Virus record (IMG/VR): IMGVR_UViG_3300042540_001399
Coordinates: 186,001-250,000 of that record
Direction: 5' to 3' (one strand)
DNA length: 64,000 nucleotides
Below the pieces are notes generated by a model that was given only the letters and a program-made list of their open reading frames with translations, was not told the origin of the DNA and did no database searches. Both the position numbers and the translations under genes were made by a program. Below, piece after piece: positions 35,994-53,476 of this stretch (positions are counted from its first letter, which is position 1; the number at the start of each line of letters is the position of its first letter).

Positions 35994-36002
35994 GTTCTTT
36001 GA
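35994..36002 (+). promoter_or_regulatory. boxA-like antitermination motif
   Basis: GTTCTTTGA; also at 39507, 39981 and 53468, all in RNA-gene leaders. Confidence 0.55.
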
Positions 36003-36019
36003 CATATTGGTCTTTATAG

Positions 36020-36090
36020 TGTTCCCTCGTCTAATGGCAGGACACGCGGTTTTGGTCCGTGGAATTGGGGTTCGAGTCCCTGGGGAACAA
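36020..36090 (+). tRNA. tRNA-Gln(TTG)
   Basis: TGTTCCC/GGGAACA; CGCGG-TTTTGGT-CCGTG. Confidence 0.92.
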
Positions 36091-36096
36091 CAATAA

Positions 36097-36180
36097 GGAA
36101 GAGTAATCACAACGGCTTGTGACTCCGTCTTGAAAACGGCAGGTACTGAAAGGTATGGGGATCGACACCTCACTCTTCCT
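36097..36180 (+). tRNA. tRNA-Ser(TGA)
   Basis: GGAAGAG/CTCTTCC; loop CTTGAAA; long variable arm; T loop ATCGACA. Confidence 0.88.
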
Positions 36181-36189
36181 CAACAATAA

Positions 36190-36262
36190 CTAGGTGTAGC
36201 TCAGATGGTAGAGCGGGTGGTTTGGGACCATCAGGCCGCAGGTTCGATCCCTGTCACTTAGA
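36190..36262 (+). tRNA. tRNA-Pro(TGG)
   Basis: CTAGGTG/CACTTAG; GGTGG-TTTGGGA-CCATC. Confidence 0.93.
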
Positions 36263-36266
36263 CAAC

Positions 36267-36342
36267 GTCTTCGTAGCTCAGTTGGTTTTAGAGCACCTCA
36301 CTTTTAATGAGGGGGTCACAGGTTCGAGCCCTGTCGGGGACA
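36267..36342 (+). tRNA. tRNA-Lys(TTT)
   Basis: GTCTTCG/CGGGGAC; CCTCA-CTTTTAA-TGAGG. Confidence 0.95.
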
Positions 36343-36384
36343 CAAAAATTTAGTAAAACTGAGCGATTTATACCAAAAAATGGT

Positions 36385-36392
36385 TATATTTG
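36385..36392 (+). promoter_or_regulatory. internal Bacteroidota -7 promoter element
   Basis: TATATTTG 17 nt before tRNA-Val. Confidence 0.6.
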
Positions 36393-36409
36393 CGTAAATA
36401 AACTAAAAA

Positions 36410-36483
36410 ACACTCTTAGCTCAGATGGTAGTAGCGGTTGTCTTACATACAACAGGTCACAGGTTCGATCCCTGTAGGGTGTA
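36410..36483 (+). tRNA. tRNA-Val(TAC)
   Basis: ACACTCT/AGGGTGT; GTTGT-CTTACAT-ACAAC. Confidence 0.92.
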
Positions 36484-36489
36484 CAATAA

Positions 36490-36575
36490 GGGAGAGTTGA
36501 GCAATTGGTTGGCTCAGCAGACTGTAAATCTGTCGTCGTAAGACCTTGGGGGTTCGAGTCCCTCCTCTCCCACCA
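36490..36575 (+). tRNA. tRNA-Tyr(GTA)
   Basis: GGGAGAG/CTCTCCC-A-CCA; loop CTGTAAA; variable arm. Confidence 0.95.
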
Positions 36576-36581
36576 CAAAAA

Positions 36582-36654
36582 GGACAAGTAGCTCAATTGG
36601 TAGAGCACCGCACTGTTAATGCGGGGGTTACAGGATCGTACCCTGTCTTGTCCG
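36582..36654 (+). tRNA. tRNA-Asn(GTT)
   Basis: GGACAAG/CTTGTCC; loop CTGTTAA; T loop ATCGTAC. Confidence 0.92.
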
Positions 36655-36660
36655 CAATAA

Positions 36661-36733
36661 GTTCACGTAGCTCAATTGGTAGAGCGCCGATCTGATACGT
36701 CGGAGGTAATGGGATCGTAACCCGTCGTGAACA
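36661..36733 (+). tRNA. tRNA-Ile(GAT)
   Basis: GTTCACG/CGTGAAC; loop CTGATAC; T loop ATCGTAA. Confidence 0.92.
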
Positions 36734-36737
36734 CTAC

Positions 36738-36821
36738 GGAAGATAAACCTTGATGGCGATAGGGTCCGCCTGCTAAGCGAGATGTACCTTTGGGTATTTG
36801 GTTCGATTCCAATGTCTTCCG
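36738..36821 (+). tRNA. tRNA-Ser(GCT)
   Basis: GGAAGA/TCTTCC; loop CTGCTAA; variable arm. Confidence 0.88.
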
Positions 36822-36827
36822 CAAAAC

Positions 36828-36897
36828 GCCGATAGGAAAGGTTTCCGATCCGGGCTCATATCCTGGATGTCATTGGGTTCGATACCCTTTATCGGTA
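36828..36897 (+). tRNA. atypical tRNA(CAT), probable elongator Met with shrunken D arm
   Basis: GCCGATA/TATCGGT; CCGGG-CTCATAT-CCTGG; D region only GGAA-AGGT-TTCC. Confidence 0.7.
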
Positions 36898-36903
36898 CTA
36901 CAT

Positions 36904-36977
36904 GGTGTATGTAGCTCAGTTGGCAGAGTGCTTGATTGTGGTTCAAGAGGTCATGGGTTCGACCCCCATCATACACA
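36904..36977 (+). tRNA. tRNA-His(GTG)
   Basis: encoded G-1, GTGTATG/CATACAC; loop TTGTGGT. Confidence 0.93.
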
Positions 36978-36978
36978 C

Positions 36979-37075
36979 AAATAGTTCACAACGGACAAGG
37001 CTTAGGCTCAAAGTGTGAGGTTATAATTCCTTATATTCCCTGAGGTGGGTGGCGAGTGGTTGACCAGAACTATTT
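36979..37075 (+). ncRNA. candidate structured RNA A
   Basis: 9-bp closing stem AAATAGTTC/GAACTATTT; no ORF. Confidence 0.45.
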
Positions 37076-37077
37076 AT

Positions 37078-37149
37078 ACCTTCGTAGCTTAATGGAAAAG
37101 CCTCAGAATACGAATCTGATGATTGGGAGTTCGACCCTCTCCGAAGGTA
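37078..37149 (+). tRNA. tRNA-Arg(ACG)
   Basis: ACCTTCG/CGAAGGT; TCAGA-ATACGAA-TCTGA. Confidence 0.92.
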
Positions 37150-37150
37150 C

Positions 37151-37283
37151 AAAAGATGATAGGAAGCGTAGAACAACGGACACGGAGGGGTGTTCGCAAG
37201 GGTACACACTAAGAATATATTTCTCTCTAAGGGTGTGTGAAGTCATACGATGGGATTCCTGATAAAGTTGTTCATCATCTTTT
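37151..37283 (+). ncRNA. candidate structured RNA B
   Basis: AAAAGATGAT/ATCATCTTTT and GAACAAC/GTTGTTC stems, internal hairpins. Confidence 0.55.
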
Positions 37284-37287
37284 ATTT

Positions 37288-37359
37288 ACCCCTTTCGTAT
37301 AATGGAAGTACAACACTCTTCTAAGGTGTCAGGTTGGAGTTCGAATCTCTGAGGGGGTA
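37288..37359 (+). tRNA. tRNA-Arg(TCT)
   Basis: ACCCCTT/AGGGGGT; ACACT-CTTCTAA-GGTGT. Confidence 0.9.
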
Positions 37360-37370
37360 CAACAAAATAC

Positions 37371-37441
37371 GCGTCTCTGGTGTAATGGTAGCATGATGGA
37401 TTCCAAACCCATCGGTCAGGGTTCGAGCCCTTGGGGACGCG
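37371..37441 (+). tRNA. tRNA-Trp(CCA)
   Basis: GCGTCTC/GGGACGC; ATGGA-TTCCAAA-CCCAT. Confidence 0.88.
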
Positions 37442-37449
37442 CTAATTAA

Positions 37450-37522
37450 GGACAGGTAGCTCAGTTGGTAGAGCGTTGGACTGAAGATCCAAGCGTCGGG
37501 GGTTCAATTCCCTCCCTGTCCA
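37450..37522 (+). tRNA. tRNA-Phe(GAA)
   Basis: GGACAGG/CCTGTCC; TTGGA-CTGAAGA-TCCAA. Confidence 0.95.
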
Positions 37523-37568
37523 CAAAATAAAATTTGTAATTTCTAACAAAAACCATTATCTTTGTATA

Positions 37569-38063
37569 ATGAAACATTTACCATACGAAGCTACAGGAAA
37601 GGCAATTAAGGGATATTCTGAATCAGAAACCGCTAGACGTGAAACAAATGACTGTGTGGTTAGAGCATTTGCATCGTCATTTGAAGTGTCTTATGATTAT
37701 GCCCATAAGTTTGTTGCGGATGAATTTGGTAGAAGACCAAGAAAAGGAACTTACGGAACTGTATCAAAACTTGTCAAAATGGCCGACAGTTTATTTAAAG
37801 TTAATGGTAAAAAAGTTTGTCCTGTTGGTATTAGACACAACGATAATATGTTAAGATCTTTGATGTATGATGTTAAAGTGAAAGGGGAAATTAAAAAAAG
37901 AAATATGACTGTTGGGACATTTGTTAAACAAAATCCAAAAGGAACTTTTTTTGTTTTGGTTAGACGACACGCATTTACAATCAAAGATGGTGTTGTAATT
38001 GGTAATTGGGATGACGCTATAAAAACAAAAAGACCAATGAGATGTGCCTTCAGAATTAAATAA
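37569..38063 (+). CDS. phage protein with NDCVVRA...HAF.I.DG motif (possible Cys-His-Asp peptidase fold)
   Basis: TATCTTTG -7 element at 37557-37564; Cys, His and Asp motif residues. Confidence 0.65.
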   Translation: MKHLPYEATGKAIKGYSESETARRETNDCVVRAFASSFEVSYDYAHKFVADEFGRRPRKGTYGTVSKLVKMADSLFKVNGKKVCPVGIRHNDNMLRSLMYDVKVKGEIKKRNMTVGTFVKQNPKGTFFVLVRRHAFTIKDGVVIGNWDDAIKTKRPMRCAFRIK

Positions 38064-38075
38064 AAAAATAAAAAA

Positions 38076-38531
38076 ATGAACCGTGTATTTAGAACGGTGG
38101 AAGGGGTTTCTATACCTGATATTGTAAAACATACTATTGATATTCTTAAAGAATGTCCATATGCTGAAATACACATTGGTACAGACTCACAAAACCATAG
38201 AAGATCAACCGTGTATGTTACGGCAATAGCATATAGATATGGTAACCGTGGGGTTCACTACATTTATCATAAACAAAAAATTAAAAAAATTCGTGATAAG
38301 TGGACAAGATTATGGAATGAAGCTGATTATTCGATCGAAGTTGCAAATTGGTTGACAAATAAAATAAAGGTTCAAGTTGAAATAGACCTTGATTACAATT
38401 ATCAAGAAAAGTACTTCAGTTCGAAGTTAGTTGGTCCAGCGGTTGGGTGGGTACAATCGTTAGGTTATAAGGCAAATATAAAACCAAATAATCAAATTGC
38501 AACAAGAGCGGCAGACCACCACTGTCGTTAA
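38076..38531 (+). CDS. RNase H-like YkuK family protein
   Basis: IGTDSQ, RLWNEA, DLDYN, IKP...AADH. Confidence 0.8.
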   Translation: MNRVFRTVEGVSIPDIVKHTIDILKECPYAEIHIGTDSQNHRRSTVYVTAIAYRYGNRGVHYIYHKQKIKKIRDKWTRLWNEADYSIEVANWLTNKIKVQVEIDLDYNYQEKYFSSKLVGPAVGWVQSLGYKANIKPNNQIATRAADHHCR

Positions 38532-38533
38532 TT

Positions 38534-38605
38534 GGTCGGGTGTCTGATGGGTAAAGTCTCGGTCTGCAAAACCGTAGTATGTGGGTTCGAATCCCACCCC
38601 GACCT
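38534..38605 (+). tRNA. tRNA-Cys(GCA)
   Basis: GGTCGGG/CCCGACC, U73; loop CTGCAAA. Confidence 0.9.
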
Positions 38606-38614
38606 CAACAAAAT

Positions 38615-38688
38615 GCCCCTATGGCGGAATTGGTATACGCGTGTGACTTAGGATCACAATCTTGCAGGTTCGAGTCCTGCTGGGGGTA
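38615..38688 (+). tRNA. tRNA-Leu(TAG), short variable loop
   Basis: GCCCCTA/TGGGGGT; TGTGA-CTTAGGA-TCACA; variable region ATCTT. Confidence 0.9.
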
Positions 38689-38727
38689 CAAATATTTTTA
38701 TTAGTATATTTATACTAAAAGATTATT

Positions 38728-39318
38728 ATGAAAAAGATTATAAGACTTACTGAATCAGATCTCGCTCGTATAGTTGGACGAGTTATTAAAGAAGAATATG
38801 ATGAAGATGATGAAGTGGAGGTTACACCTGAAATGATTATCAAAATGCTTATGGATAGTGCCGAATCAACCCCACAAGAAAATTATGATGACCTATATGA
38901 TTGGATGCAAGATGTATTTTCACCGGTTGAAAGTGAACTTGAGGATATGGGGTATGATATTGACGACCTTCGTATGACATATGATGATGTTATAATGAGT
39001 TTATGGGATGATAATGATGAAGATGATGAGGAATCATTATATGAATCAGATCTCGCTCGTATCGTTAAACAAGTTATTAGTGAATCTAAAAAGAATCTTA
39101 GTAAATCTGAAATATTGAAGATGTCAAAAGATGAGCTAAAAGATGTTTATGGTGAATTGGAAGTAAAAGGTGAGTATCACGGAAACAAAGGAACATTCCA
39201 CCACTTCAAAAGAACTGCAATCGGAGATATTGTCTGTAGTTTTAGAACTGATGACTCAACACCATCAGGATTGAAAAGAAATACTCAAGGAATTAAAGTC
39301 AAAAATTTAGATTTTTAA
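38728..39318 (+). CDS. protein with two LxESDL motifs
   Basis: MKKIIRLTESDLARIV and internal LYESDLARIV; ATATTTAT 38706-38713. Confidence 0.8.
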   Translation: MKKIIRLTESDLARIVGRVIKEEYDEDDEVEVTPEMIIKMLMDSAESTPQENYDDLYDWMQDVFSPVESELEDMGYDIDDLRMTYDDVIMSLWDDNDEDDEESLYESDLARIVKQVISESKKNLSKSEILKMSKDELKDVYGELEVKGEYHGNKGTFHHFKRTAIGDIVCSFRTDDSTPSGLKRNTQGIKVKNLDF

Positions 39319-39324
39319 TAAAAC

Positions 39325-39356
39325 TTGACACTTTTGAAATTATTAGTATATTTATA
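39325..39356 (+). promoter_or_regulatory. promoter upstream of leader 2
   Basis: TTGACA 39325-39330 and TATATTTATA 39347-39356. Confidence 0.6.
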
Positions 39357-39377
39357 AAACAAATTAAAAAACCGCAA

Positions 39378-39446
39378 ATGAAAAATTTACACATATTATT
39401 GATAGGGGGCGATTTAGCTGAAGCAACTTTCAAGAAGAGGGTGTAA
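39378..39446 (+). CDS. attenuator leader peptide 2 (22 aa)
   Basis: MKNLHILLIGGDLAEATFKKRV; codons match tRNA array 2. Confidence 0.85.
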   Translation: MKNLHILLIGGDLAEATFKKRV

Positions 39447-39469
39447 TATTTTATACATTTAATATTTAG

Positions 39470-39504
39470 AACCCCTCTTCCAAAAAAGAGGGGTTTTTTG
39501 TTTT
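39470..39504 (+). terminator. attenuator terminator 2
   Basis: AACCCCTCTT/AAGAGGGGTT plus T tract; boxA-like motif and tRNA-Leu follow. Confidence 0.9.
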
Positions 39505-39530
39505 AGGTTCTTTGAAATAATGGTAATAAT

Positions 39531-39615
39531 GGTTCGGTGGTGGAATTGGCAATACACGACAGGTTTAAGCCCTGTTTCCCATTGAGGATTGTGGGTTCGA
39601 GTCCCACCCGGACTA
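39531..39615 (+). tRNA. tRNA-Leu(TAA)
   Basis: GGTTCGG/CCGGACT; ACAGG-TTTAAGC-CCTGT; variable arm. Confidence 0.93.
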
Positions 39616-39620
39616 CAACA

Positions 39621-39716
39621 AAAACACATAAACTTTGGTTCCCACACAGCGGTGAGACGGGGTAAGTTATATACAATTTCTCGGGGCTGGAAGTAGAAAG
39701 CCAAAGAATGTGTTTT
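39621..39716 (+). ncRNA. candidate rod-like structured RNA C (6S-like?)
   Basis: AAAACACAT/ATGTGTTTT, CTTTGGTT/AGCCAAAG, CAGC/GCTG, GAGA/TCTC nested stems. Confidence 0.55.
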
Positions 39717-39777
39717 TTTAAAAAAAACTTTACAAAGTATTTGGTAGAACAAAATAAAAAATTTAATTTTGTAATAA

Positions 39778-39894
39778 ATGAAGACAATTGAAGTTACATA
39801 TCAAGAAATCAAAATGGCAACAAGGCCAAATGTGTATAAAAATAAAAAAAAATACACAAGAAAAGAAAAACATAAAAAAGATTTGGTAGATTAA
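39778..39894 (+). CDS. small basic protein, ArfA-like motif (38 aa)
   Basis: MKTIEVTYQEIKMATRPNVYKNKKKYTRKEKHKKDLVD; TAATTTTG at 39764-39771. Confidence 0.6.
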   Translation: MKTIEVTYQEIKMATRPNVYKNKKKYTRKEKHKKDLVD

Positions 39895-39905
39895 AAAAAA
39901 TCTTA

Positions 39906-39989
39906 TATCTTTGTTAAACAAATGACGGGGGTAGGAAAATTAGTGTTGTGGATTCCTACTCCCGTGTAAAAGGGAAGAAAGTTCTTTGA
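39906..39989 (+). promoter_or_regulatory. -7 promoter, 13-bp hairpin and boxA-like motif (rrn-leader-like)
   Basis: TATCTTTG 39906-39913; ACGGGGGTAGGAA/TTCCTACTCCCGT 39925-39965; GTTCTTTGA 39981-39989. Confidence 0.6.
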
Positions 39990-40000
39990 TTTAAAATATT

Positions 40001-40081
40001 GTGGTTGTAAGCAATGGGAAACTCGTTAAGTACATCAACCAGTTGGCTCAAGATGGTGAAACGAGAGTGTGAGTCAACTAC
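40001..40081 (+). ncRNA. candidate structured RNA D
   Basis: GTGGTTG/CAACTAC, CTCGTT/AACGAG, CATC/GATG nested stems. Confidence 0.45.
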
Positions 40082-40103
40082 TAAATCACAAAAAAAATGA
40101 AAT

Positions 40104-40228
40104 AGGCAAGTGGCGGAATTTATGGCAGACGCTTAGGTTGATTCCCCGTAAGAAGTCACCGAGATATAGCTGGGGATGTCTCTTGAAAAGGGAACTATAT
40201 CGTACAGGTTCGAATCCTGTTTTGCCTA
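40104..40228 (+). ncRNA. tRNA-like RNA with expanded anticodon/variable region and pseudoknot
   Basis: AGGCAAG/TTTGCCT acceptor, Leu-type D arm, ACAGG-TTCGAAT-CCTGT T arm, ~70-nt insert. Confidence 0.75.
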
Positions 40229-40233
40229 CACAT

Positions 40234-40306
40234 CGCGGGATGTGGAAGATGGTTATCCGCTCGGTCTCATAAGCCGAGATCGCCGGTTCGAGTCCGGCTC
40301 CCGCAA
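40234..40306 (+). tRNA. initiator tRNA-fMet(CAT)
   Basis: C1:A72 mismatch, CGCGGGA/TCCCGCA; loop CTCATAA. Confidence 0.9.
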
Positions 40307-40311
40307 CTTAA

Positions 40312-40371
40312 AGGGTGGATAGGTGGAAGGGCCTTTCCTGAAAGACGGTTTACTAGGCCCGTGTCCACCCT
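40312..40371 (+). ncRNA. candidate small structured RNA E
   Basis: AGGGTGGATA/TGTCCACCCT and GGGCCT/AGGCCC stems. Confidence 0.45.
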
Positions 40372-40382
40372 ACTGAATTTAT

Positions 40383-40463
40383 GCTGACGTACCAGTGGAT
40401 GCTTATATCATCTATACCTGTAGCGGTAAGTTGAAAACGTTGGTTCGAATCCAACCGTCAGTA
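40383..40463 (+). tRNA. D-armless tRNA-like RNA with TAT anticodon-like loop
   Basis: GCTGACG/CGTCAGT; GGATG-CTTATAT-CATCT; GTTGG-TTCGAAT-CCAAC; 7-nt D replacement. Confidence 0.6.
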
Positions 40464-40466
40464 CGG

Positions 40467-40610
40467 GAGTGTATGCAGTAGAGATCTGCTTATGATGGTA
40501 GGGACAAACACTTTAAAAAAGGGTCCCAAAGAGATAAGCCGTTTAGTAGTTTTGGTCGATAAAAACTAACGGATTTTATAGTAATGGTTCACCGATCGAA
40601 ACCAATACTC
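40467..40610 (+). ncRNA. candidate multibranched RNA F
   Basis: GAGTGT/ATACTC closing stem with four internal hairpins. Confidence 0.5.
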
Positions 40611-40681
40611 ATGATGTCAGAAAGGTTGATCACCTAATTCATGTAAACACCGTGACAACACCCCAAAGTTGTCACACTTTT

Positions 40682-40757
40682 GCGGGAGTAGCTCAATTGG
40701 TAGAGTTCCAGCCTTCCAAGCTGGCTGTTGAGGGTTCGAATCCCTTCTCCCGCTCCA
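40682..40757 (+). tRNA. tRNA-Gly(TCC)
   Basis: GCGGGAG/CTCCCGC-T-CCA; loop CTTCCAA. Confidence 0.95.
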
Positions 40758-40761
40758 AGTT

Positions 40762-40834
40762 GGGCCTGATGCCGACGGCAGGTCGAGTGGTTTGCAACCA
40801 CATCGTTTGGGTTCGATTCCCACAGTGTCCACCA
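40762..40834 (+). tRNA. atypical tRNA-Ala(TGC)
   Basis: G3:U70, A73, encoded CCA; GTGG-TTTGCAA-CCAC; bulged acceptor stem. Confidence 0.75.
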
Positions 40835-41007
40835 AATAAACAAAAAAACAAAGTAGTGATGAAGGAAGTTTTGTCAGGAACTTTAAAATCAAGAAAAGTT
40901 AATTTTGTTCAGATTGAAAATAACAGTGATTTTTTAAGTTCTTTAAGAAAAAAAATAAAAAAAAGAATAAGTAATTTAAAAAAAACAATTAAATTTGTAA
41001 AAAAAAG

Positions 41008-41087
41008 AAGATGAGTTTCCCTACATCCCGGATTAGTGAGAAACTTAAAGAGGGACAAAAGTGGTACACAAGTCCACGACTCATCTT
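41008..41087 (+). ncRNA. candidate structured RNA G
   Basis: AAGATGAGT/ACTCATCTT closing stem, two hairpins; TAAATTTG at 40990-40997. Confidence 0.45.
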
Positions 41088-41092
41088 AATTT

Positions 41093-41164
41093 GGTCGGTT
41101 CATCTAGGGGTCAGGATACAAGGTTTTCATCCTTGTCACACGGGTTCGAATCCCGTACCGACTA
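41093..41164 (+). tRNA. tRNA-Glu(TTC)
   Basis: GGTCGGT/ACCGACT; CAAGG-TTTTCAT-CCTTG. Confidence 0.93.
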
Positions 41165-41189
41165 CAAACCTGTCAAGGTAGTACAGGAA

Positions 41190-41305
41190 GGTCAGGAGTG
41201 TAATGAGGCACGGTGCCAAGTCCTAAAGACACCACGGTCCAAGAGCAATTTGGACGCGAGAAGTTATAAGGTTGCTCATTGTAGGTTCGAATCCTACCCT
41301 GACTT
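41190..41305 (+). ncRNA. tRNA-like RNA: acceptor plus T arm with novel 84-nt body
   Basis: GGTCAGG/CCTGACT; GTAGG-TTCGAAT-CCTAC; AATGAG/CTCATT and GTCCAA/TTGGAC stems. Confidence 0.7.
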
Positions 41306-41307
41306 CA

Positions 41308-41455
41308 CGGTTCGGATCATCACCGAATAGTATGCCCAATACGATGAGAAATGAGGTGATACCTCATATGGGACTTCTGATAGATAAAGGATCTATTCGG
41401 TTTGACTAACCGCGGGAAATATCAAAGAGGGTTGAAGAACTACGTACCCTCGAGT
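41308..41455 (+). ncRNA. candidate multi-hairpin RNA H
   Basis: CCGAATAG/CTATTCGG, ATGAGG/CCTCAT, CGGTT/AACCG, GAGGG/CCCTC. Confidence 0.4.
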
Positions 41456-41461
41456 CCAATT

Positions 41462-41536
41462 GGTCCATTGGTGTAGTGGCTAACATTCATCCCTGTCACG
41501 GATGAGCCGCGAGTTCGATTCTCGCATGGACCGCCA
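41462..41536 (+). tRNA. tRNA-Asp(GTC)
   Basis: GGTCCAT/ATGGACC-G-CCA; CATCC-CTGTCAC-GGATG. Confidence 0.95.
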
Positions 41537-41558
41537 AACTTATTAAAAATTAACCATT

Positions 41559-41828
41559 ATGAAAACTTTTCAAGACTTGGAATTTATAAAAATAAATGAT
41601 GCACCGTTTATGGTTGGTAAAAAATCCCGTATGCATTTTGATAATGGGTTCGGTGTATCTGTTGTATCACACTCTTATTCATATGGGGGTCGTGATGGTC
41701 TTTATGAAGTCGCGGTCCTTGACTCTGACGACAATCTTACCTACGATACTCCAATAACCAATGATGTAATGGGTTACTTAACTGAACAAGATGTTACTAA
41801 TGTCATGAAACAAGTTCAAGAGCTATAA
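41559..41828 (+). CDS. hypothetical phage protein
   Basis: 89 aa; FDNGFGVSVV...GGRDGLYEVAVL. Confidence 0.75.
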   Translation: MKTFQDLEFIKINDAPFMVGKKSRMHFDNGFGVSVVSHSYSYGGRDGLYEVAVLDSDDNLTYDTPITNDVMGYLTEQDVTNVMKQVQEL

Positions 41829-41913
41829 AAGATGACAGTTTTTTTATTCATAACATTTTTAACGACACTTTTTTTGTTGAGAAAAAAAAGAAAGTTTTAA
41901 GTAGATAAAAAAA

Positions 41914-41987
41914 GGTCTCTTAGCTCATTAGGTTAGAGCAACTGACTCATAATCAGTAGGTGGTTGGTTCGATCCCAACAGGGACCA
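41914..41987 (+). tRNA. tRNA(CAT), Ile2 (lysidine)-type
   Basis: GGTCTCT/AGGGACC; GACTCATAATC anticodon arm as in bacterial tRNA-Ile2 (recalled, not searched). Confidence 0.8.
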
Positions 41988-42032
41988 CAAAAGTATTGAA
42001 TATTTTAAAACAGAAATTATTATTTATAATAT

Positions 42033-43791: not shown

Positions 43792-45549
43792 ATGTCAAAA
43801 TTGTCTAAAGTATCTTTTTTTATTTCGATAGTGATTATGTCAATTTATTTTGTGACACAATCTTTACTTGTGACAGGAAACATAAGTTATAGTAAAAATA
43901 TCGGTTATGCTGGATATATATGTTTTTTACTTTTTGTATCTTTTTTTGGGATTTACATTTATGAATATTTGAAAAAAAACAAAAAAATAAAAAAAAGAAG
44001 TGATTACGTTAAAAAATTAAATGAAACATTAATATATCAATCATTAAATTCTTCTTTTTTCGAAGGTAACACGTCAGAAGGCGCTAAAGTTCTAACTAAA
44101 GAAGTCAGTAATTCAATCAATGCTGACAGATGCTCAGTTTGGTTGTACAATACAGACAGAACTTCAATTATTTGTCAACAATTGTATTCCAAAAAAACTG
44201 ACAGCTGGGAACAAAATTATGAATTATTAAAAGAAGATTATAAACCTTATTTTTTATCTCTTTTATTAAATCCTATCATAGTTGCAAATGATGCAAGAAA
44301 TCATAGTGCAACATCATGTTTTAAAGACACTTATCTTGACCCATTGGGTATTAAATCTATGCTTGATGTTCCCATTTCCTACAAGGGAGACACTATTGGG
44401 GTAATATGTATTGAAAATTTTGATTTTAGAATTTGGGACCAAGTTGAAATTGATTTTGCTCAAATGTTATCAGCATTATATTCATTTGCATATTCAATAA
44501 AAGAAAATAATAATGTTAATAAGACAATTGATGATATTGAAGGATTTATAGATCATTCGGTATTAGTAAGTAAAACGGATTCTAAGGGTAAGATAGTTTA
44601 TGTGAATAAAAAGTTTGAAGATGTTTCTGGTTGGAAACTTAGTCAGGTAATAGGAAAAGATCATAACATTGTTAATTCAGGAAAACATACCAAAAATTTT
44701 TGGAAAGACATGTATAAAACAACAGTAGAAAAAAGAAAGATTTGGAACCAAATAGTTACAAATAAAACAAAAAAAGGTGAACTTTATTGGGTTGATTCTT
44801 ATATAATGGCAGAATTTGACGAACAAGATTGTTTAAAAGGGTTTATGTCTATAAGGTATGATGTTACAGATTTGATAAAAAAAACTGAAGAAATAGCGAA
44901 GAAAAATGTTTATTTGGAACATGCCGCAAAAATATTAAGACATGATATGCATTCAGGAATTAATACTTACATACCAAGAGGGATAAGTTCGTTAGAAAGA
45001 AGATTGAGTGATAACCAAATTCAAGAATATAAATTGGAAGCCCCTTTGAAAATGTTGAAAGAAGGTCTCAAACACGCTCAGAAAGTTTATAAAGGTGTTT
45101 ATGAATTTACTAATTTAGTAAAAAAAGATTCAGTGCTCAACAAAACTAAAGTAAACTTAAAAGAAATATTAGAAAGTTACCTATCAACAACATCATATAA
45201 ATCACAAGTTGTAATTGATACTTTAGAAGACCATGAAGTTAATGAACCTTTATTTTGTACCGCCATCGATAATTTAATTAGAAATGGCCTCAAATATAAT
45301 GACAATGATAACAAATTTGTACATTTATATATGGAAGATTTTCAGTTGGTAATTCAGGATAATGGAAGGGGGCTGTCACAAGAAGAATTTGACAATTTAT
45401 CGAAACCATACGTAAGAAAAGAAAACCAAAAAGAAAGTGGTAGTGGTTTAGGTTTAAATATATGTTTAGCAATACTCAAAGAACACGGATTCAGCGTTTC
45501 TTGTGAAAAAAACCATATAGGCACTAAAATTAAAATTAAATTCAAATGA
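43792..45549 (+). CDS. sensor histidine kinase (2 TM, GAF, PAS/PAC, HisKA, HATPase)
   Basis: H box RHDMH, N box NLIRNGLKYN, G1 QDNGRG, G2 GSGLGL; PAC KTKKGELYWV. Confidence 0.92.
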   Translation: MSKLSKVSFFISIVIMSIYFVTQSLLVTGNISYSKNIGYAGYICFLLFVSFFGIYIYEYLKKNKKIKKRSDYVKKLNETLIYQSLNSSFFEGNTSEGAKVLTKEVSNSINADRCSVWLYNTDRTSIICQQLYSKKTDSWEQNYELLKEDYKPYFLSLLLNPIIVANDARNHSATSCFKDTYLDPLGIKSMLDVPISYKGDTIGVICIENFDFRIWDQVEIDFAQMLSALYSFAYSIKENNNVNKTIDDIEGFIDHSVLVSKTDSKGKIVYVNKKFEDVSGWKLSQVIGKDHNIVNSGKHTKNFWKDMYKTTVEKRKIWNQIVTNKTKKGELYWVDSYIMAEFDEQDCLKGFMSIRYDVTDLIKKTEEIAKKNVYLEHAAKILRHDMHSGINTYIPRGISSLERRLSDNQIQEYKLEAPLKMLKEGLKHAQKVYKGVYEFTNLVKKDSVLNKTKVNLKEILESYLSTTSYKSQVVIDTLEDHEVNEPLFCTAIDNLIRNGLKYNDNDNKFVHLYMEDFQLVIQDNGRGLSQEEFDNLSKPYVRKENQKESGSGLGLNICLAILKEHGFSVSCEKNHIGTKIKIKFK

Positions 45550-46149: not shown

Positions 46150-47604
46150 ATGAAAAAAATAATTTTTATTCTTTTAATATTGTTTTCATTCTACAATATA
46201 ACAATCGCACAAGGACTTATCAAAAATAAAAAAGAAATTACCGAGTCTATGTGGGATCAAGGAGTGCCTGTCTTACCTGAAGATGAATATATTTCATCTT
46301 TAATTGATAAAGTTGGATTCGATAACTTAAGACAAAGAAATAAAGCCGTTAACAAAGAAGAAGCTAAATTGTGTAGAGAAATTGGTATTGCTTTTTACAA
46401 TAGAGAAATGTATGAAGCTGCTGATTGGTATTTGGAAAGAGTACGAGGTTTTGTTGAAGTTGTTGAACTTGAACCTGAAATAGTTTTTGAAACTAAAAAA
46501 GAAGAAACCGAAGAACCTTCAGAAGATTTATCTGTGGAAGATTTGAAAAGTCTACAGTCAGACAAGGTTTTTTTACAAAACCTACCAAAAAGTTATGAAA
46601 ATGTTTCACCTACAGATATGAAAAAATTGGCAGAAGAAATTGAAGGTCAAATAGAAAAACTTATTAAAGAAAAGGAAGAATTACTAAAAAGACACGCTCC
46701 TAAAGAAGTGATAGATGCTAAAGATGCGACTATAGGGTCATTAGGAAAAGAAAAAAAAATCATAGACCTATCAATAGATAAAGACAAACTTAAAAATGAA
46801 ACAAAAGTTTTGGGTATTGAAAAAAGAAATTTGAAATTTTATTTAAATTGGGCAATAGCTATAGGTTTGATATTAATATTAATAATATTTGTTTTAATAC
46901 AGAGAAAAACTATCAAAGGACAGGATAAAGAAATTGATAAACAACTAAATGACATAAATACTAAAAACACGTATTTAGAACATGCGGCAAGAATAATCAG
47001 ACATGATATGCATTCTGGTATAAACACATATATTCCAAGGGGTATATCTTCTTTGGAAAAAAGGCTGACTGTCGACGACATGAAAAATCTTAAGATCGAA
47101 GGTCCAATAAAGATGATTCGTGAAGGTTTAAATCACACCCAAAAAGTTTATAAAAATGTTTATGAATTTACAAATTTAGTTAAACAAAATGTTGTTTTAG
47201 AAAAAACCAAACAAAATATAAAAAATACTTTAGAACAGTTTTTTGTAAAAACATCATACTATAATCAAATCAAAATAAAGAATCTCCCGACTTTAGAAAT
47301 TAATGAAGTTCTTTTTTGTGGGGCAATTGAAAACTTTGTGAAAAATGGTCTAAAATACAATAATAACGAAAATAAAGAAGTTTTAATTTTTGAAGAAGAT
47401 AATTATATAGTAGTACAAGATAATGGTATTGGTATGACATCAACTGAATTTGAAAAACAAATTAAAATAGTTTCTAAAGAAGATATTGGTGAAATCGGTT
47501 TAGGCTTAAATATTTCAATTGCCATTTTAAAAGAACACGGATTTAGTGTTGAATGTGAAAAAAATGAAATTGGAACTAAAATAAAAATTAAATTTAAAAG
47601 TTAA
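46150..47604 (+). CDS. sensor histidine kinase with periplasmic coiled-coil sensor
   Basis: signal peptide, single TM, RHDMH, NFVKNGLKYN, QDNGIG, GLGLNI. Confidence 0.9.
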   Translation: MKKIIFILLILFSFYNITIAQGLIKNKKEITESMWDQGVPVLPEDEYISSLIDKVGFDNLRQRNKAVNKEEAKLCREIGIAFYNREMYEAADWYLERVRGFVEVVELEPEIVFETKKEETEEPSEDLSVEDLKSLQSDKVFLQNLPKSYENVSPTDMKKLAEEIEGQIEKLIKEKEELLKRHAPKEVIDAKDATIGSLGKEKKIIDLSIDKDKLKNETKVLGIEKRNLKFYLNWAIAIGLILILIIFVLIQRKTIKGQDKEIDKQLNDINTKNTYLEHAARIIRHDMHSGINTYIPRGISSLEKRLTVDDMKNLKIEGPIKMIREGLNHTQKVYKNVYEFTNLVKQNVVLEKTKQNIKNTLEQFFVKTSYYNQIKIKNLPTLEINEVLFCGAIENFVKNGLKYNNNENKEVLIFEEDNYIVVQDNGIGMTSTEFEKQIKIVSKEDIGEIGLGLNISIAILKEHGFSVECEKNEIGTKIKIKFKS

Positions 47605-49854: not shown

Positions 49855-50511
49855 ATGAAAAAGTTGATAACTGAAAACGAAAAAAATAGAATTAGAAAAA
49901 TGAATTCTATTGATGAAAGTTTATTTTCAGATGTGTTGGCATCAATACAAAAATCAGAAACTTTTCAGGATCTTAAAAAGAAATTCAAGGAATTAACGGG
50001 TGTTGACTTTGAAGAAAAAGAAAAGTCGGGAGATGTAAGCAAAGATTTCAAAAATTATAAAATTACCGAACCTAATGATGATGACATCAAGTTTTATAAA
50101 AAAATACTTGAAAAATTGGACGCACCTAATACTAAAGAAAATTTAGCGTTTCTTTACGCGTGGAGACAAGCGGAGGGTGCAAAATCCGCCTTTAACCCTT
50201 TTAATACCACACAAGAAATGGATAGTTCAACATTTATGAACTGTCTGAAGAAAAAAGATAATAAGTGTATTGGGGGAGTTAGAAATTATAAATCTGAAAA
50301 AGATGGAATAGATGCTACAGTCAAAACTTTGAAAAATGGTAGATATGATTGTATTGTTAATGGTTTACAAAAAAATAAAGGGTCAAAAGATATCGCCAAA
50401 TGTAGTTCTTTAGATACTTGGGGAACAAAAGACGGTATTTTAAGAGTTTTAGATGGTGGTAAAATAAATCCACCTGAAATATCAAGATCCACAATAAAAA
50501 AAGTTGATTAA
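49855..50511 (+). CDS. lysozyme/glucosaminidase-like protein with ITENE leader
   Basis: AWRQAEG...NPFNTT...NY.S...GIDATVKTL..GRY. Confidence 0.6.
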   Translation: MKKLITENEKNRIRKMNSIDESLFSDVLASIQKSETFQDLKKKFKELTGVDFEEKEKSGDVSKDFKNYKITEPNDDDIKFYKKILEKLDAPNTKENLAFLYAWRQAEGAKSAFNPFNTTQEMDSSTFMNCLKKKDNKCIGGVRNYKSEKDGIDATVKTLKNGRYDCIVNGLQKNKGSKDIAKCSSLDTWGTKDGILRVLDGGKINPPEISRSTIKKVD

Positions 50512-50512
50512 T

Positions 50513-51121
50513 ATGGAAGAATACGTAGGGATTATTATTGCGTTTATAACAGGTGTGTTGGGACCAATATTACTTTTATACTTGAAAAACAAATTAGAAA
50601 AAAAAGAAAAGCCAGACATGGTCAAAGACACTCTGAGAGTTGCTGAGTTGGTAAATAATAAAATTGAACATATTCGTGAAGAATTTAATGCCGATCGTGT
50701 TTGGGTTACACAATTTCATAATGGTGGTAATTTTTATCCTACAGGTAAATCAATGGCAAAATTTTCAATAATGTATGAAACAGTAAATTCTGGCGTTTCT
50801 TCAGTTCAAACTAATTTTCATAATATACCTGTTAACCTTTTTTCTAAGTCTATAAATCAATTATTAAATAACGATACTATTGAAATTGCCGACTACAAAG
50901 ATGAAACAATAGCAACTTACGGACTAAAATATATTGCTGAAGATACAGGTTGTAAATCAAGTTACTTATTTGCAATAAAAACAATTGATGAAAAGTTTAT
51001 TGGTACATTAGGTTTAGATTATACCAAAAGAAAAACTAAATTAGATATTGAATCTATAAATCATTTATTGGTTCACGCAACGTCTTTAGGTGGTGTTTTG
51101 ATGACACACTTGTCTGAATAA
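50513..51121 (+). CDS. single-TM GAF-domain protein (T4 holin T-like architecture)
   Basis: N-terminal TM; ADRVWVTQFHNGG...IGTLGLDY. Confidence 0.65.
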   Translation: MEEYVGIIIAFITGVLGPILLLYLKNKLEKKEKPDMVKDTLRVAELVNNKIEHIREEFNADRVWVTQFHNGGNFYPTGKSMAKFSIMYETVNSGVSSVQTNFHNIPVNLFSKSINQLLNNDTIEIADYKDETIATYGLKYIAEDTGCKSSYLFAIKTIDEKFIGTLGLDYTKRKTKLDIESINHLLVHATSLGGVLMTHLSE

Positions 51122-51156
51122 TTTTTTATTACAAAAAAATTTATTATTTTTGTAGT

Positions 51157-51645
51157 ATGAATATTTTTTTTCTTGACTACGATACCCAAAAATGTGCACA
51201 ATATCATTGCGATAAACATGTGGTCAAGATGGTATTAGAAACTGCACAACTTTTATGTGGGGTTCATCATACAACCCCCCAAGTTACCCCCCAAGTTCCC
51301 TACAAGTTATCCCACAAAAATCACCCATGCGCAATATGGACTCGTGAAAGTTTATCAAACTACTTATATCTTTGTGATCTTGGTTTAGAATTATGTAATG
51401 AATATAGTTTTAGATATGGTAAAACACATAAGTCACAACAAGTAATCGAGTGGTGTCTTGATAATAAACCAAACATAGTTGATAAAGGTTTTACCACACC
51501 ACCAAAAGCAATGCCCGATGAATATAAAGTTTTTGACGTTATTGAATCTTATAGAAACTACTATCGTGGGGCAAAAAAAAGTTTTGCTTCATGGAAAAAT
51601 AGACAAATACCCGATTGGTTTCAAACTGATGAAGTATTTATATGA
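51157..51645 (+). CDS. pyrimidine-dimer DNA glycosylase (endonuclease V-like)
   Basis: MNIFFLD, HCDKHVVKM.LE.AQLL, H.NHPC..W. Confidence 0.8.
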   Translation: MNIFFLDYDTQKCAQYHCDKHVVKMVLETAQLLCGVHHTTPQVTPQVPYKLSHKNHPCAIWTRESLSNYLYLCDLGLELCNEYSFRYGKTHKSQQVIEWCLDNKPNIVDKGFTTPPKAMPDEYKVFDVIESYRNYYRGAKKSFASWKNRQIPDWFQTDEVFI

Positions 51646-53183
51646 TAAAATCATATATGAAAGGTTTATTAAATGAACATTTGACTAGAATAAGATCATT
51701 GATGTCTATCAATGAATCTTTAGTTGATGCATACCCAAAATTTTCGAAAAAAATATTTGATGAAGTAGACCCTACTTGGGGTGGTGGGCCAAATTCGCAT
51801 TCATCAAGACACCCTGATGCATCCGGCAAAGATTGGTTTAGTAATAACGCATACGACATCATGGCACCTGAAGGGACACCAATATATTCAATATCGGAAG
51901 GTTATGTTGATAAAATTACCGACAATCCACCAGGTTTAAGATCAGTTGGTGGTAAGAGAATTTATGGGGACAGTTTAACCATTAGAGGAACAGGGGGTGA
52001 TCCCGATGTTTTCTACACACATGTAACAAAAATTGTTGTTGAAGAGGGACAATACGTTGATAGGGGTCAATTATTAGCATTCATAATCAAAGGGGAGTTG
52101 GGTATACCTGAACACGTTCATGTTGCAGTAAAAGTTGGTGATGTGAAAGATTTCTTAGATGTTGATGGAAACATAAACAGAGTCAATATTGATTTAGTGG
52201 ATAGACTAAAAATCTTACCAACAAACAAGGAACTTGAAGTGACAACCGACCCAAAAACAATAATGGGCGCTGCGGCCGGTCTTACCGCATCAGCTATAAG
52301 TTCTTTAAATATTAATAGACCTGAGTCTGACATCAGTGGCATTGCAACAAGATTCGGTATTAAAGATACTGATGTTAACATGGATTCGGTATCAGGTGTT
52401 TTGAATAAAATAATATTATCTTCTGAAGGTCTTGGTACTGATGAAACTGGAATTCATGATGCAATAAAGAAATTAAAAAGTTGTTATGAACTTGATGAAA
52501 TTAACAAAATTGTAGAAAGAAAAGAAATCGACGGAAAAAAATACAAAGACATTTATGATTATATAAATAGTGAAATGAATTATGGTGATGAGCTGTTTGT
52601 AAAAAGTTTAGTAAAAACCATAAATAATATATGTCCTGATACCGTAACTGATAAAGGTACTCAAATAGTGAAAGTAACAAGATCATCATCTTTAGGATCT
52701 GGAATCGATAGAGTCAGTCCTATAAAATTATTAAATGATCTAAAATCATATGGATTATCTGATAAGGCCGCCAAAGGTGTTGTTGCGAATGCTTTTGGTG
52801 AAAGTGGGTTTAACGTTAAGGCTAAAGGAGATTCTGGACCCAACGCCGAAAACAACACAAGATCAATAAATATAGATGGTAAAAAATACTGTTCGTTTGG
52901 ATTGTGGCAATATAATGTCTGTGGTGGTATGGGGGTTTCTTATTTGAAGAACTATAATATAGATGTTGACAGATCAACAGACGCTGAAAAAATCAGGGTT
53001 CTATTTGATTATAATAAACAAATTGAATTTATGTCTAAAAGAATTAAAGAAGAACAATCCAAAAGCGAAAAAGATGTTAGAACATGGATTGATTGGATTG
53101 TTGATAATGTAGAAAGACCATCAGATAGATACGGTGCAAAAATGAAAAGACAAGAATTTGCAAAACAACAAGGTTGGTCTTAA
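51642..53183 (+). CDS. multidomain wall hydrolase: M23-like, annexin-like repeat, phage tail lysozyme
   Basis: AYDIMAPEGTP..FYTH..HVH; GLGTDETGI; GVVANAFGESG..FGLWQY. Confidence 0.75.
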   Translation: MIKSYMKGLLNEHLTRIRSLMSINESLVDAYPKFSKKIFDEVDPTWGGGPNSHSSRHPDASGKDWFSNNAYDIMAPEGTPIYSISEGYVDKITDNPPGLRSVGGKRIYGDSLTIRGTGGDPDVFYTHVTKIVVEEGQYVDRGQLLAFIIKGELGIPEHVHVAVKVGDVKDFLDVDGNINRVNIDLVDRLKILPTNKELEVTTDPKTIMGAAAGLTASAISSLNINRPESDISGIATRFGIKDTDVNMDSVSGVLNKIILSSEGLGTDETGIHDAIKKLKSCYELDEINKIVERKEIDGKKYKDIYDYINSEMNYGDELFVKSLVKTINNICPDTVTDKGTQIVKVTRSSSLGSGIDRVSPIKLLNDLKSYGLSDKAAKGVVANAFGESGFNVKAKGDSGPNAENNTRSINIDGKKYCSFGLWQYNVCGGMGVSYLKNYNIDVDRSTDAEKIRVLFDYNKQIEFMSKRIKEEQSKSEKDVRTWIDWIVDNVERPSDRYGAKMKRQEFAKQQGWS

Positions 53184-53245
53184 TTTTTTTTTAGTACCTA
53201 TTGTTTTATAGTTTTATTATTTATATAATTAAAAAAAAAGAAAAA

Positions 53246-53389
53246 ATGGAAGATATCAATCAATTAGAAAATGAAATTTTTGCCTACATCAATGATAAAG
53301 GTCAAGAAGTTTTTACACCTAATTTTGAATTTGCGAACATCATGGCAAAAAAATATGGTACTTTAAAAGTTTTTGTACAAAAATTTTAA
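53246..53389 (+). CDS. small hypothetical protein
   Basis: ATG 53246 after TATTTAT; MEDINQLENEIFAY. Confidence 0.55.
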   Translation: MEDINQLENEIFAYINDKGQEVFTPNFEFANIMAKKYGTLKVFVQKF

Positions 53390-53408
53390 AAAAAAAATTA
53401 CAAAGTAC

Positions 53409-53476
53409 TTGACAGATACAAATAAATGTAGTAACTTTGTAAAACAAATCAGGAAAAGACCTGAAACGTTCTTTGA
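53409..53476 (+). promoter_or_regulatory. Bacteroidota-type promoter plus boxA-like motif
   Basis: TTGACA 53409-53414, TAACTTTG 53432-53439, GTTCTTTGA 53468-53476. Confidence 0.7.

Follow-up and report, generated by a model that had tools for sequence, protein, structure and literature searches.

We found that a 291-kb lake phage of Bacteroidota carries exact copies of the ribosomal-RNA boxA antitermination signal of that phylum in front of its tRNA arrays and its giant GOLLD RNA (and, in relatives, in front of the tmRNA), but not in front of protein genes. The phage therefore probably borrows the rRNA transcription machinery of its host to make its untranslated RNAs. boxA itself is a known element, and what is new here is its context.

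The analysis started from a window of 64,000 nt (positions 186,001 to 250,000 of IMG/VR record IMGVR_UViG_3300042540_001399), in which the initial annotation had listed four copies of GTTCTTTGA in front of RNA genes. A search of the window located the word on the + strand at 35994, 39507, 39981 and 53468, so the observation was confirmed at all four positions, each on the sense strand of an untranslated RNA unit. The contexts given for them also held. Site 1 lies 7 nt after tRNA-Thr and 18 nt before tRNA-Gln; site 2 starts 2 nt after the U-tract of a terminator-like hairpin and 16 nt before tRNA-Leu(taa); site 3 lies 16 nt after a 13-bp hairpin; and site 4 lies 4 nt after a 5-bp hairpin and about 490 nt before the Rfam GOLLD core. 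A fifth copy on the - strand at 45476 had not been listed, and a one-mismatch copy, GTTCaTTGA, 6 nt upstream of the tmRNA gene had been missed; with this degenerate copy the set is larger than four. Shuffling of the window gave a mean of 1.22 copies, and 0 of 100 shuffles reached 5. The features of the region, in window coordinates, are as follows.

35658..35685 (+), promoter-like site (TTGTCA, 16 nt, TATATT) of RNA unit 1, 10 of 12 consensus positions, of the same class as the site at 39325
35733..35840 (+), leader ORF 1 (35 codons), conserved in relatives
35872..35911 (+), terminator-like hairpin with U-tract (attenuator 1), directly before tRNA-Thr
35915..35987 (+), tRNA-Thr(tgt)
35994..36010 (+), boxA site 1, GTTCTTTGA plus the CATATTGG extension, identical to the Bacteroidota rrn spacer 17-mer
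36020..37523 (+), tRNA array 1 (Gln to Phe, 12 tRNAs plus tRNA-like elements), untranslated
39325..39352 (+), promoter-like site (TTGACA, 16 nt, TATATT) of RNA unit 2, 11 of 12 consensus positions, the best site in the region
39378..39446 (+), leader ORF 2 (22 codons, 3 TTA and 1 TTG), conserved in relatives
39468..39505 (+), terminator-like hairpin with U-tract (attenuator 2)
39507..39515 (+), boxA site 2, before tRNA-Leu(taa) at 39531-39616
39906..39913 (+), Bacteroidota-type -7 promoter box TATCTTTG of RNA unit 3, with TTTG upstream
39925..39965 (+), 13-bp hairpin in the leader of unit 3 (boxB-like position), z = -2.8
39981..39989 (+), boxA site 3, in the same context in several relatives
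39998..41536 (+), untranslated unit 3, with a conserved structured ~90-nt RNA, tRNA-like elements, and tRNA-Met, Gly, Glu and Asp
53432..53439 (+), -7 promoter box TAACTTTG of the GOLLD unit, invariant in 12 distinct leaders
53449..53464 (+), 5-bp hairpin (boxB-like position) with two compensatory pairs among relatives
53468..53476 (+), boxA site 4, about 20-30 nt into the predicted GOLLD transcript
53967..54377 (+), conserved 3' core of GOLLD RNA (320 bits); the whole transcript is probably about 53446-54440, with a terminator at 54411-54435
56336..56344 (-), one-mismatch boxA-like word GTTCaTTGA, before the tmRNA 5' end
55939..56329 (-), tmRNA gene (114 bits)
45476..45484 (-), chance copy of the 9-mer, antisense inside the histidine-kinase-like ORF 43774-45549, not part of the system

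We then extended the count to the whole genome (290,887 nt); a motif equally frequent in coding DNA had been named in advance as evidence against the idea. The genome holds 8 copies, of which the four sense-strand, non-coding ones are the four sites above and the other four are antisense to ORFs. One of these, at position 256944 of the genome, looked intergenic, but it is not conserved in relatives and lies antisense to a conserved small ORF. No copy was found in sense coding DNA or in protein-gene leaders of this genome, as the initial annotation had noted for the leaders. The total of 8 is no higher than the 7 copies of the reversed control word, which by itself would fit a chance recurrence of a T-rich 9-mer in AT-rich DNA, so the signal lies in placement and not in number. 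Four of the 8 copies fall in the 6.0 kb of sense-strand RNA loci (binomial P = 8e-7; composition expectation 0.03). Of 18 bipartite Bacteroidota-type promoters in non-coding DNA, only the one before site 3 is followed by the motif. Some tRNA genes have no boxA (38534-38689, 41914-42107, and the promoter before tRNA-Glu), and the first two of these groups follow translated ORFs.

The conservation of the word was examined in 61 related viral loci (958 kb), where it occurs 167 times forward and 18 times reverse, while about 6 per strand are expected. Of the 167 forward copies, 145 lie outside ORFs of 100 aa or more and only 3 are in sense coding DNA. The exact word follows 43 of 45 tRNA-Thr genes, precedes 18 of 19 GOLLD genes (after a -7 promoter box and a covarying small hairpin), and precedes 12 of 13 tmRNA genes, although the tmRNA copy of this phage has a mismatch in the U-run. 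Across 109 distinct flanks, an invariant core with a conserved extension is retained while both flanks vary in sequence and length, which meets the expectation for an element conserved under selection relative to its surroundings. Chance recurrence is refuted by these results.

A second point named beforehand was whether the motif resembles the boxA of the host phylum. To address this, the extended 17-nt phage consensus, GTTCTTTGA[A/C]ATATTGG, was scanned blind in bacterial genomes. Of 81 sites, mostly in Bacteroidota, 55 are in rrn context: 49 lie in 16S-23S spacers 58-236 nt before the 23S gene, 4 are in spacers cut by the locus end, and 2 are in 16S leaders. The element is present in 13 of 13 rrn operons of five complete Bacteroidota genomes, after tRNA-Ile and tRNA-Ala. 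The rrn leaders of these genomes show promoter, small hairpin and then AGTTCTT(A/T)(A/G)AAA, the same order as in the phage GOLLD and unit-3 leaders. The exact host is not identified, and only 9 of 151 sampled Bacteroidota genomes hold the exact 17-mer, although many of these are draft assemblies that may lack rrn operons. Compared with experimentally validated boxA RNAs, GUUCUUUGAAA differs at 1 of 11 positions from B. subtilis GAUCUUUGAAA, which binds NusB, and at 2 of 11 from E. coli GCUCUUUAACA, and the consensus GYTCTTTAANA is matched except at A8. In the literature, boxA binds NusB/S10 and nucleates the rrn complex, the B. subtilis consensus AUGAUCUUUGAAA binds NusB, and a tethering or chaperone model has been proposed for the rrn complex. 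The same 17-mer also sits next to tRNA genes in many unrelated viral contigs.

Since the 17-mer is identical to the host spacer, we considered whether the copies are passive remnants of host rrn or tRNA-flank DNA captured together with tRNA genes, or short repeats that merely mediate shuffling of tRNA cassettes. A Niabella chromosomal tRNA-Leu has the 17-mer 12 nt upstream, and the gene that follows the motif differs among relatives (Gln, Ser, or a tRNA-like element). However, the core is invariant among variable flanks, the strand bias is strict, and the motif follows tRNA-Thr and not the Ile and Ala tRNAs of host spacers. It also precedes GOLLD and tmRNA genes, whose host counterparts lack it; host ssrA leaders have no boxA, so the tmRNA use has no host precedent. 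We regard this reading as unlikely.

A role as an RNA processing or other protein-binding signal, such as an endonuclease site that separates precursors or part of a processing stem as next to 23S, is also unlikely. In its favour, the word lies 4-24 nt before many tRNA 5' ends and, in host spacers, near the 23S flank, and the extension ATATTGG goes beyond the 11-12 nt usually called boxA. Against it, the same core occurs right after rrn promoters in host leaders, where boxA is expected, and it matches validated boxA sequences at 9-10 of 11 positions. No complementary partner word is enriched, as the low reverse count shows, and the distance to the next gene ranges from 4 nt to about 500 nt.

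We found still less support for a DNA-level element, in which the TTTG within the word would act as the Bacteroidota -33 box, or the word would be an operator for a phage regulator or for the sigma factor that the phage encodes. No TAnnTTTG follows at the required spacing at any of the four sites, and tRNA genes start 4-24 nt downstream, which leaves no room for a promoter. The word lies downstream of recognisable promoters at variable distance, and the same word sits inside host rrn transcripts.

All four sites are on the strand of the RNA genes, downstream of predicted promoters and outside ORFs. The transcription starts are predicted and not mapped, and RNA libraries gave only short contigs, which cover site 3 and are weak evidence. 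In centroid folds, boxA is unpaired at sites 1, 3 and 4. A boxB-like hairpin, as found in rrn leaders, precedes sites 3 and 4, but none is present at site 1 and the hairpin before site 2 is a terminator, so this feature speaks neither clearly for nor against an rrn-type element. No phage NusB, NusG, S10, RNAP beta or T7-type RNAP was detected, whereas the six Bacteroidota genomes checked as candidate hosts encode NusB and Rho.

Taken together, the interpretation offered by the initial annotation, that the phage borrows host rrn antitermination to transcribe long untranslated RNA operons, layered on attenuators, is supported, and both tests that it named came out in favour. Our best explanation, in which we have fairly high confidence, is that the motif is a genuine rrn-type boxA, an RNA signal in the nascent transcript that binds host NusB-S10 and, with NusG, NusA and further factors, converts the elongating host RNA polymerase into an rRNA-style antitermination and chaperone complex. 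In this view, boxA is placed at or near the 5' end of each long untranslated RNA unit. Unit 1 reads promoter, leader ORF, terminator, tRNA-Thr, boxA and 12 further tRNAs; unit 2, promoter, leader ORF, terminator, boxA and tRNA-Leu; unit 3, promoter, hairpin, boxA, structured RNAs and tRNAs; the GOLLD unit, promoter, small hairpin, boxA and about 1 kb of GOLLD RNA; and the tmRNA unit, promoter, boxA-like word and tmRNA. The analysis shows the sequence identity with the rrn boxA of the host phylum, the sense-strand placement restricted to RNA units, and the conservation across relatives. Nus factor binding, protection of these ribosome-free transcripts from Rho and from pausing, and possibly tethering of the 5' leader to the polymerase to help folding and processing of RNAs whose two ends must pair (tmRNA, GOLLD, tRNAs) are inferred; NusB-S10 binding, read-through of Rho-dependent (and some intrinsic) terminators and faster elongation are untested, and there are no transcript-end data. 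The layering on attenuators fits units 1 and 2, but at sites 1 and 2 boxA lies after the intrinsic terminator and cannot help to pass it; the attenuators would decide whether transcription enters a unit, and boxA would act only after that decision. Short units (tmRNA of 390 nt, a single tRNA-Leu) hardly need anti-Rho protection, and there a folding or processing role of the Nus complex may matter more than antitermination.

The closest known element is the boxA of bacterial rrn operons (leader and 16S-23S spacer), which nucleates the NusB-S10-NusG-NusA-SuhB-S4 antitermination and chaperone complex. The phage element shares its core, lies on the sense strand of untranslated transcripts, and often follows a tRNA and, at sites 3 and 4 though not at all sites, a small hairpin, as in rrn spacers; it differs in being encoded by a virus, with no rRNA present, and in that several copies follow leader-peptide attenuators. 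boxA is also used outside rrn upstream of suhB and of CRISPR arrays in Proteobacteria, for Nus-dependent protection from, or control by, Rho, carrying polymerase through ribosome-free RNA. Those are chromosomal host genes in another phylum, whereas here a phage applies the signal to all classes of its structured RNA genes. The lambda nutL/nutR sites are likewise a phage-borne boxA that recruits host Nus factors, but lambda's boxA deviates from the rrn consensus, needs protein N bound to boxB, and serves protein-coding early operons. Here the word is the host rrn consensus and the targets are RNA genes, so we did not classify it as a nut site; no N-like factor is known, and an N-like gene was not searched for. 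A lambda-like layout, a hairpin plus the same word after an HTH gene of the early operon, was seen in the temperate Bacteroides phage BI-TP1. Other phage or Bacteroidota antitermination systems, such as the HK022 put RNA and the NusG-like UpxY at polysaccharide loci, also make transcription processive over long units, but use different signals and factors and have no sequence relation to this motif.

A further reading is possible but tentative, namely that phages of Bacteroidota run a self-contained, rrn-like expression system for all their structured RNAs. Leader-peptide attenuators, whose codons sample the very tRNAs encoded downstream, would gate entry into the unit, and a host-identical boxA would then turn the host polymerase into an rRNA-type antitermination and chaperone complex that resists Rho and holds the 5' leader until the 3' end appears. 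This would aid folding and processing of tRNA arrays, tmRNA and the cage-forming GOLLD RNA. As the host's own tmRNA gene lacks the signal, this would be a viral innovation.

Large phages often carry long tRNA arrays and big non-coding RNAs, and how several kilobases of ribosome-free RNA escape Rho and fold correctly has had no stated answer; we found no paper that links boxA with phage tRNA arrays or GOLLD. A host-identical boxA in front of these RNA units gives a simple and testable mechanism. It also gives a handle for expressing GOLLD-type RNAs in vivo and a host-phylum marker for uncultured phages, because the motif tracks the host's rrn boxA, and it extends Nus-factor biology to Bacteroidota, where it is hardly studied. 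The placement after leader-peptide attenuators points to layered control of phage tRNA supply.

The window, positions 186001-250000 of a 290,887-nt IMG/VR virus record rated 99% complete, with 31% G+C, holds the following RNA genes:

35915-42107 (+), the stretch containing 22 tRNA genes, all on this strand
53967-54377 (+), a GOLLD RNA (RF02032, 320 bits)
55939-56329 (-), a tmRNA gene

For the search of named relatives, a tblastn of a window protein against named phages returned nothing, and a blastn of the tRNA region returned only tRNA-level matches; the family is therefore known only from metagenomes. The tRNA region (35801-41800) was found nearly identical (66-97% of sampled words) in 14 lake-water or aquatic DNA runs from separate studies dated 2023-2025, and the phage is therefore widespread and persistent in lakes. 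No NusB, NusG, S10, RNA polymerase beta subunit or T7-type polymerase was detected in the phage, although it encodes a sigma-70-family protein outside the window (100017-100226 of the virus contig). Promoters of Bacteroides follow a bipartite pattern, TTTG then 17-21 nt then TAnnTTTG, and in this phage we found the pattern to be about 8.5 times denser in non-coding than in coding DNA. This points to transcription by the core polymerase of a Bacteroidota host, although the host itself was not identified. The phage also carries ORFs with GAF, PAS and HATPase_c domains (43774-45549, histidine-kinase-like) and a second HATPase_c protein (46150-47604), and sensor kinases are unusual in a phage.

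The initial annotation had reported four copies of a boxA-like word, GTTCTTTGA, in front of RNA genes only, and this observation was confirmed, with the contexts as it had described them. The copies in the window are as follows:

35994 (+), site 1, 7 nt after tRNA-Thr and 18 nt before tRNA-Gln
39507 (+), site 2, directly after a terminator-like hairpin with U-tract (39468-39505) and 16 nt before tRNA-Leu(taa)
39981 (+), site 3, 16 nt after a 13-bp hairpin that follows a TATCTTTG -7 box
53468 (+), site 4, after a TAACTTTG -7 box and a 5-bp hairpin, about 490 nt before the conserved GOLLD core
45476 (-), a further copy on the opposite strand
56336-56344 (-), a one-mismatch copy (GTTCaTTGA), 6 nt before the tmRNA gene, which the initial annotation had missed

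Shuffles of the window gave a mean of 1.22 copies, and none of 100 reached five. A genome-wide count had been proposed in advance as a check, and it gave eight copies, no more than a reversed control word (7), so that the number alone means nothing. However, the placement does. The four sense-strand, non-coding copies are exactly the four of the initial annotation, and, on a gene map that is a long-ORF approximation, three others are antisense inside ORFs. The last, at position 256944 of the record, was considered as a boxA in a protein-gene leader, but we rejected this reading since the copy lies antisense to a small conserved ORF and is not kept in relatives. Four of the eight copies fall in the 6.0 kb of sense-strand RNA loci (P = 8e-7). 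Of 18 bipartite promoters in non-coding DNA, only the one of RNA unit 3 (the unit of site 3) is followed by the motif. We also considered the motif itself as part of a promoter, and this reading was rejected for lack of a -7 box at the right spacing and for lack of room before the tRNA genes. In addition, an E. coli-like variant, GTTCTTTAA, lies at 40938-40946 in the A-rich spacer before the promoter of tRNA-Glu, and its functional status is uncertain.

To examine conservation, we searched with the RNaseH-like ORF inside the tRNA array (38076-38531) and obtained 61 related viral loci at 58-100% protein identity. In 958 kb of these loci the 9-mer occurs 167 times forward and 18 times reverse, where about 6 per strand are expected; since the loci are related, the counts are not independent events. 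Among the forward copies, 145 lie outside ORFs of 100 aa or more, and only 3 are in sense coding DNA. The 109 distinct flanking contexts fall into five recurring layouts, namely after tRNA-Thr, directly after the U-tract of the attenuator hairpin, 10-20 nt after a -7 promoter box, after a 13-bp hairpin, and after the small hairpin of the GOLLD leader. When genes rather than the motif itself were used as anchors, 43 of 45 tRNA-Thr genes were followed by the exact word within 45 nt, 18 of 19 GOLLD genes had it 450-500 nt before the Rfam core, and 12 of 13 tmRNA genes had it 6-22 nt before the mature 5' end, right after a TATATTTG box. The GOLLD gene of one relative (G024; positions 940-1005 of its locus L202) lacks the promoter-hairpin leader and has GTTCTTTGT in a different upstream context, and a similar context with the exact word occurs in L025 and L064, two further loci. 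In the GOLLD leaders the -7 box and the motif are invariant, and the 5-bp hairpin between them keeps pairing through two double changes, with 98% of cells paired. Beyond the core, the phage sites share an A-rich run upstream and [A/C]ATATTGG downstream. Chance as an explanation is excluded by the relatives. A passive remnant of captured host DNA is contradicted by the invariance of the core amid variable flanks, by the strand bias, and by the presence of the word before GOLLD and tmRNA genes.

A comparison with the boxA of Bacteroidota rrn leaders and spacers had also been named beforehand as a test of the interpretation. We scanned the 17-nt phage consensus in 185,579 species genomes, and the listed hits were mostly Bacteroidota, including Pedobacter, Mucilaginibacter, Chitinophaga, Niabella, Ferruginibacter and Sediminibacterium. 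The 16S and 23S genes were located with short universal primer-site patterns and with a genome search using RF00177. Of 81 sites, 49 lie 58-236 nt before the 23S 5' end, 4 more lie in spacers cut by the locus end, and 2 lie in 16S leaders. A sample of 150 genomes of the phylum gave the exact 17-mer in only 9 genomes, which did not narrow down the host. In five complete genomes, every rrn operon (13 of 13) has the 17-mer in the spacer after tRNA-Ile and tRNA-Ala. In the four rrn leaders that we read, each promoter is followed by a small hairpin and then AGTTCTT(A/T)(A/G)AAA, and a further GATCTTTGAAA-type word lies nearer the 16S gene. This order of promoter, hairpin and boxA is the order seen in the phage GOLLD and unit-3 leaders. 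The core differs at one position from the B. subtilis boxA that binds NusB and at two from the E. coli consensus, and the six Bacteroidota genomes that we checked have NusB and Rho. A processing signal cannot be excluded as a rival explanation, but it does not explain the match to validated boxA or the promoter-proximal host copies.

We then asked whether the tmRNA leader had been copied from the host. The tmRNA genes of five of the Bacteroidota genomes checked (the host ssrA loci L246-L250) have ordinary TAnnTTTG promoters but no boxA-like word in the 110 nt upstream, unlike 12 of 13 phage tmRNA genes, so the phage did not simply copy a host arrangement there. However, one host tRNA-Leu(aag) gene, on the chromosome of Niabella insulamsoli, carries the rrn-spacer 17-mer 12 nt upstream (positions 2438-2454 of locus L192), after a protein gene, and boxA may therefore also serve some host tRNA genes.

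The surroundings of the motif in the tRNA region showed further features:

35658-35685 and 39325-39352 (+), the promoters of the two attenuator units, of the E. coli-like form TTG(A/T)CA, 16 nt, TATATT
35733-35840 (+), leader ORF 1 (35 codons)
39378-39446 (+), leader ORF 2 (22 codons)
39998-40095 (+), a conserved ~90-nt RNA directly after boxA site 3
36092-36189, 36738-36900, 36985-37077, 37151-37287, 40104-40228, 40310-40470, 40762-40834 and 41166-41461, stretches between the called tRNAs

The promoters of the attenuator units are distinct from the TTTG/TAnnTTTG class used elsewhere, and the sigma-70-family protein of the phage might read one of the two classes. Transcription starts were predicted from promoter consensus. 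RNA evidence was limited to short contigs of relatives from RNA libraries, which cover, among other places, site 3; DNA carry-over cannot be excluded for them, and they cannot show starts, ends or read-through. The two leader ORFs, which precede the attenuator terminators and are conserved as peptides in relatives, seem matched to the tRNA genes that follow. Leader 1 lacks Ala, Asp, Glu and Gly and uses the amino acids of array 1 (Thr, Gln, Pro, Lys, Val, Tyr, Asn, Ile, His, Arg, Trp, Phe, Cys, Leu), while leader 2 has 3 TTA and 1 TTG before tRNA-Leu(taa) and adds Gly, Asp, Glu and Ala, the amino acids of the second block. This looks like leader-peptide attenuation of tRNA genes by the supply of those same tRNAs. 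The ~90-nt RNA has a 9-bp helix with three covarying pairs among 8 relatives and no Rfam family. The stretches between the called tRNAs carry T-arm-like GGTTCGA motifs and acceptor-like end pairing but are not called by ARAGORN, and Rfam gave only weak hits (tRNA-Sec 31 bits, tRNA 27 bits with a long insertion, tmRNA-like 13 bits); they may be unusual or interrupted tRNAs, or tRNA-like RNAs.

boxA is already known in rrn operons, in lambda nut sites, and before suhB and CRISPR arrays. GOLLD is known from the literature to be phage-borne, near tRNA islands, of unknown function, and to form a 14-mer cage. In a literature search that did not cover most subscription journals, we found no paper linking boxA with phage tRNA arrays, GOLLD or phage tmRNA. 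The element is of a known kind, and what differs here is its placement before the RNA genes of a phage. The habit is not confined to this family; the 17-mer occurs in many other viral contigs, and 25 of 81 sites lie within 60 nt of a same-strand tRNA gene. In temperate Bacteroides and Phocaeicola phages (BI-TP1, PV4-TP1, LoVEphage), a hairpin followed by GTTCTTTGACATATTG lies in a 385-nt untranslated gap, after an HTH gene of the early operon and before the exonuclease and RecT genes, next to a divergent S24-type repressor; in BI-TP1 this is at positions 2465-2517 of locus L375 (PQ571265.1, about 51082-51134). This is a lambda nutR-like layout, and the same context recurs in many gut-type viral contigs.

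The initial annotation had proposed that the phage borrows host rrn antitermination to transcribe long untranslated RNA operons, layered on the attenuators, and our comparisons supported this interpretation. Our data show that the phage carries, on the transcribed strand of each long untranslated unit, the same word that marks rrn leaders and spacers in its host phylum, and that this is conserved and absent from protein-gene leaders. According to the literature, boxA RNA binds NusB-S10 and nucleates a modified elongation complex that resists Rho, elongates faster, and may keep the leader tethered to help long-range RNA pairing. That the phage uses host Nus factors in this way is our inference. 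The motif is unpaired in centroid folds at sites 1, 3 and 4, as a protein-bound single-stranded signal should be; protein structure and complex prediction and large protein searches were not used, because the question concerns an RNA signal. For the short tmRNA unit, anti-Rho protection seems less needed, and a folding or processing role is the likelier benefit there, although this part is speculation. The layout of units 1 and 2, the two attenuator units, is promoter, conserved leader ORF, intrinsic terminator and then boxA, so that boxA cannot help to pass that terminator. In this view, the attenuator would decide on entry, and boxA would modify only those polymerases that had passed.
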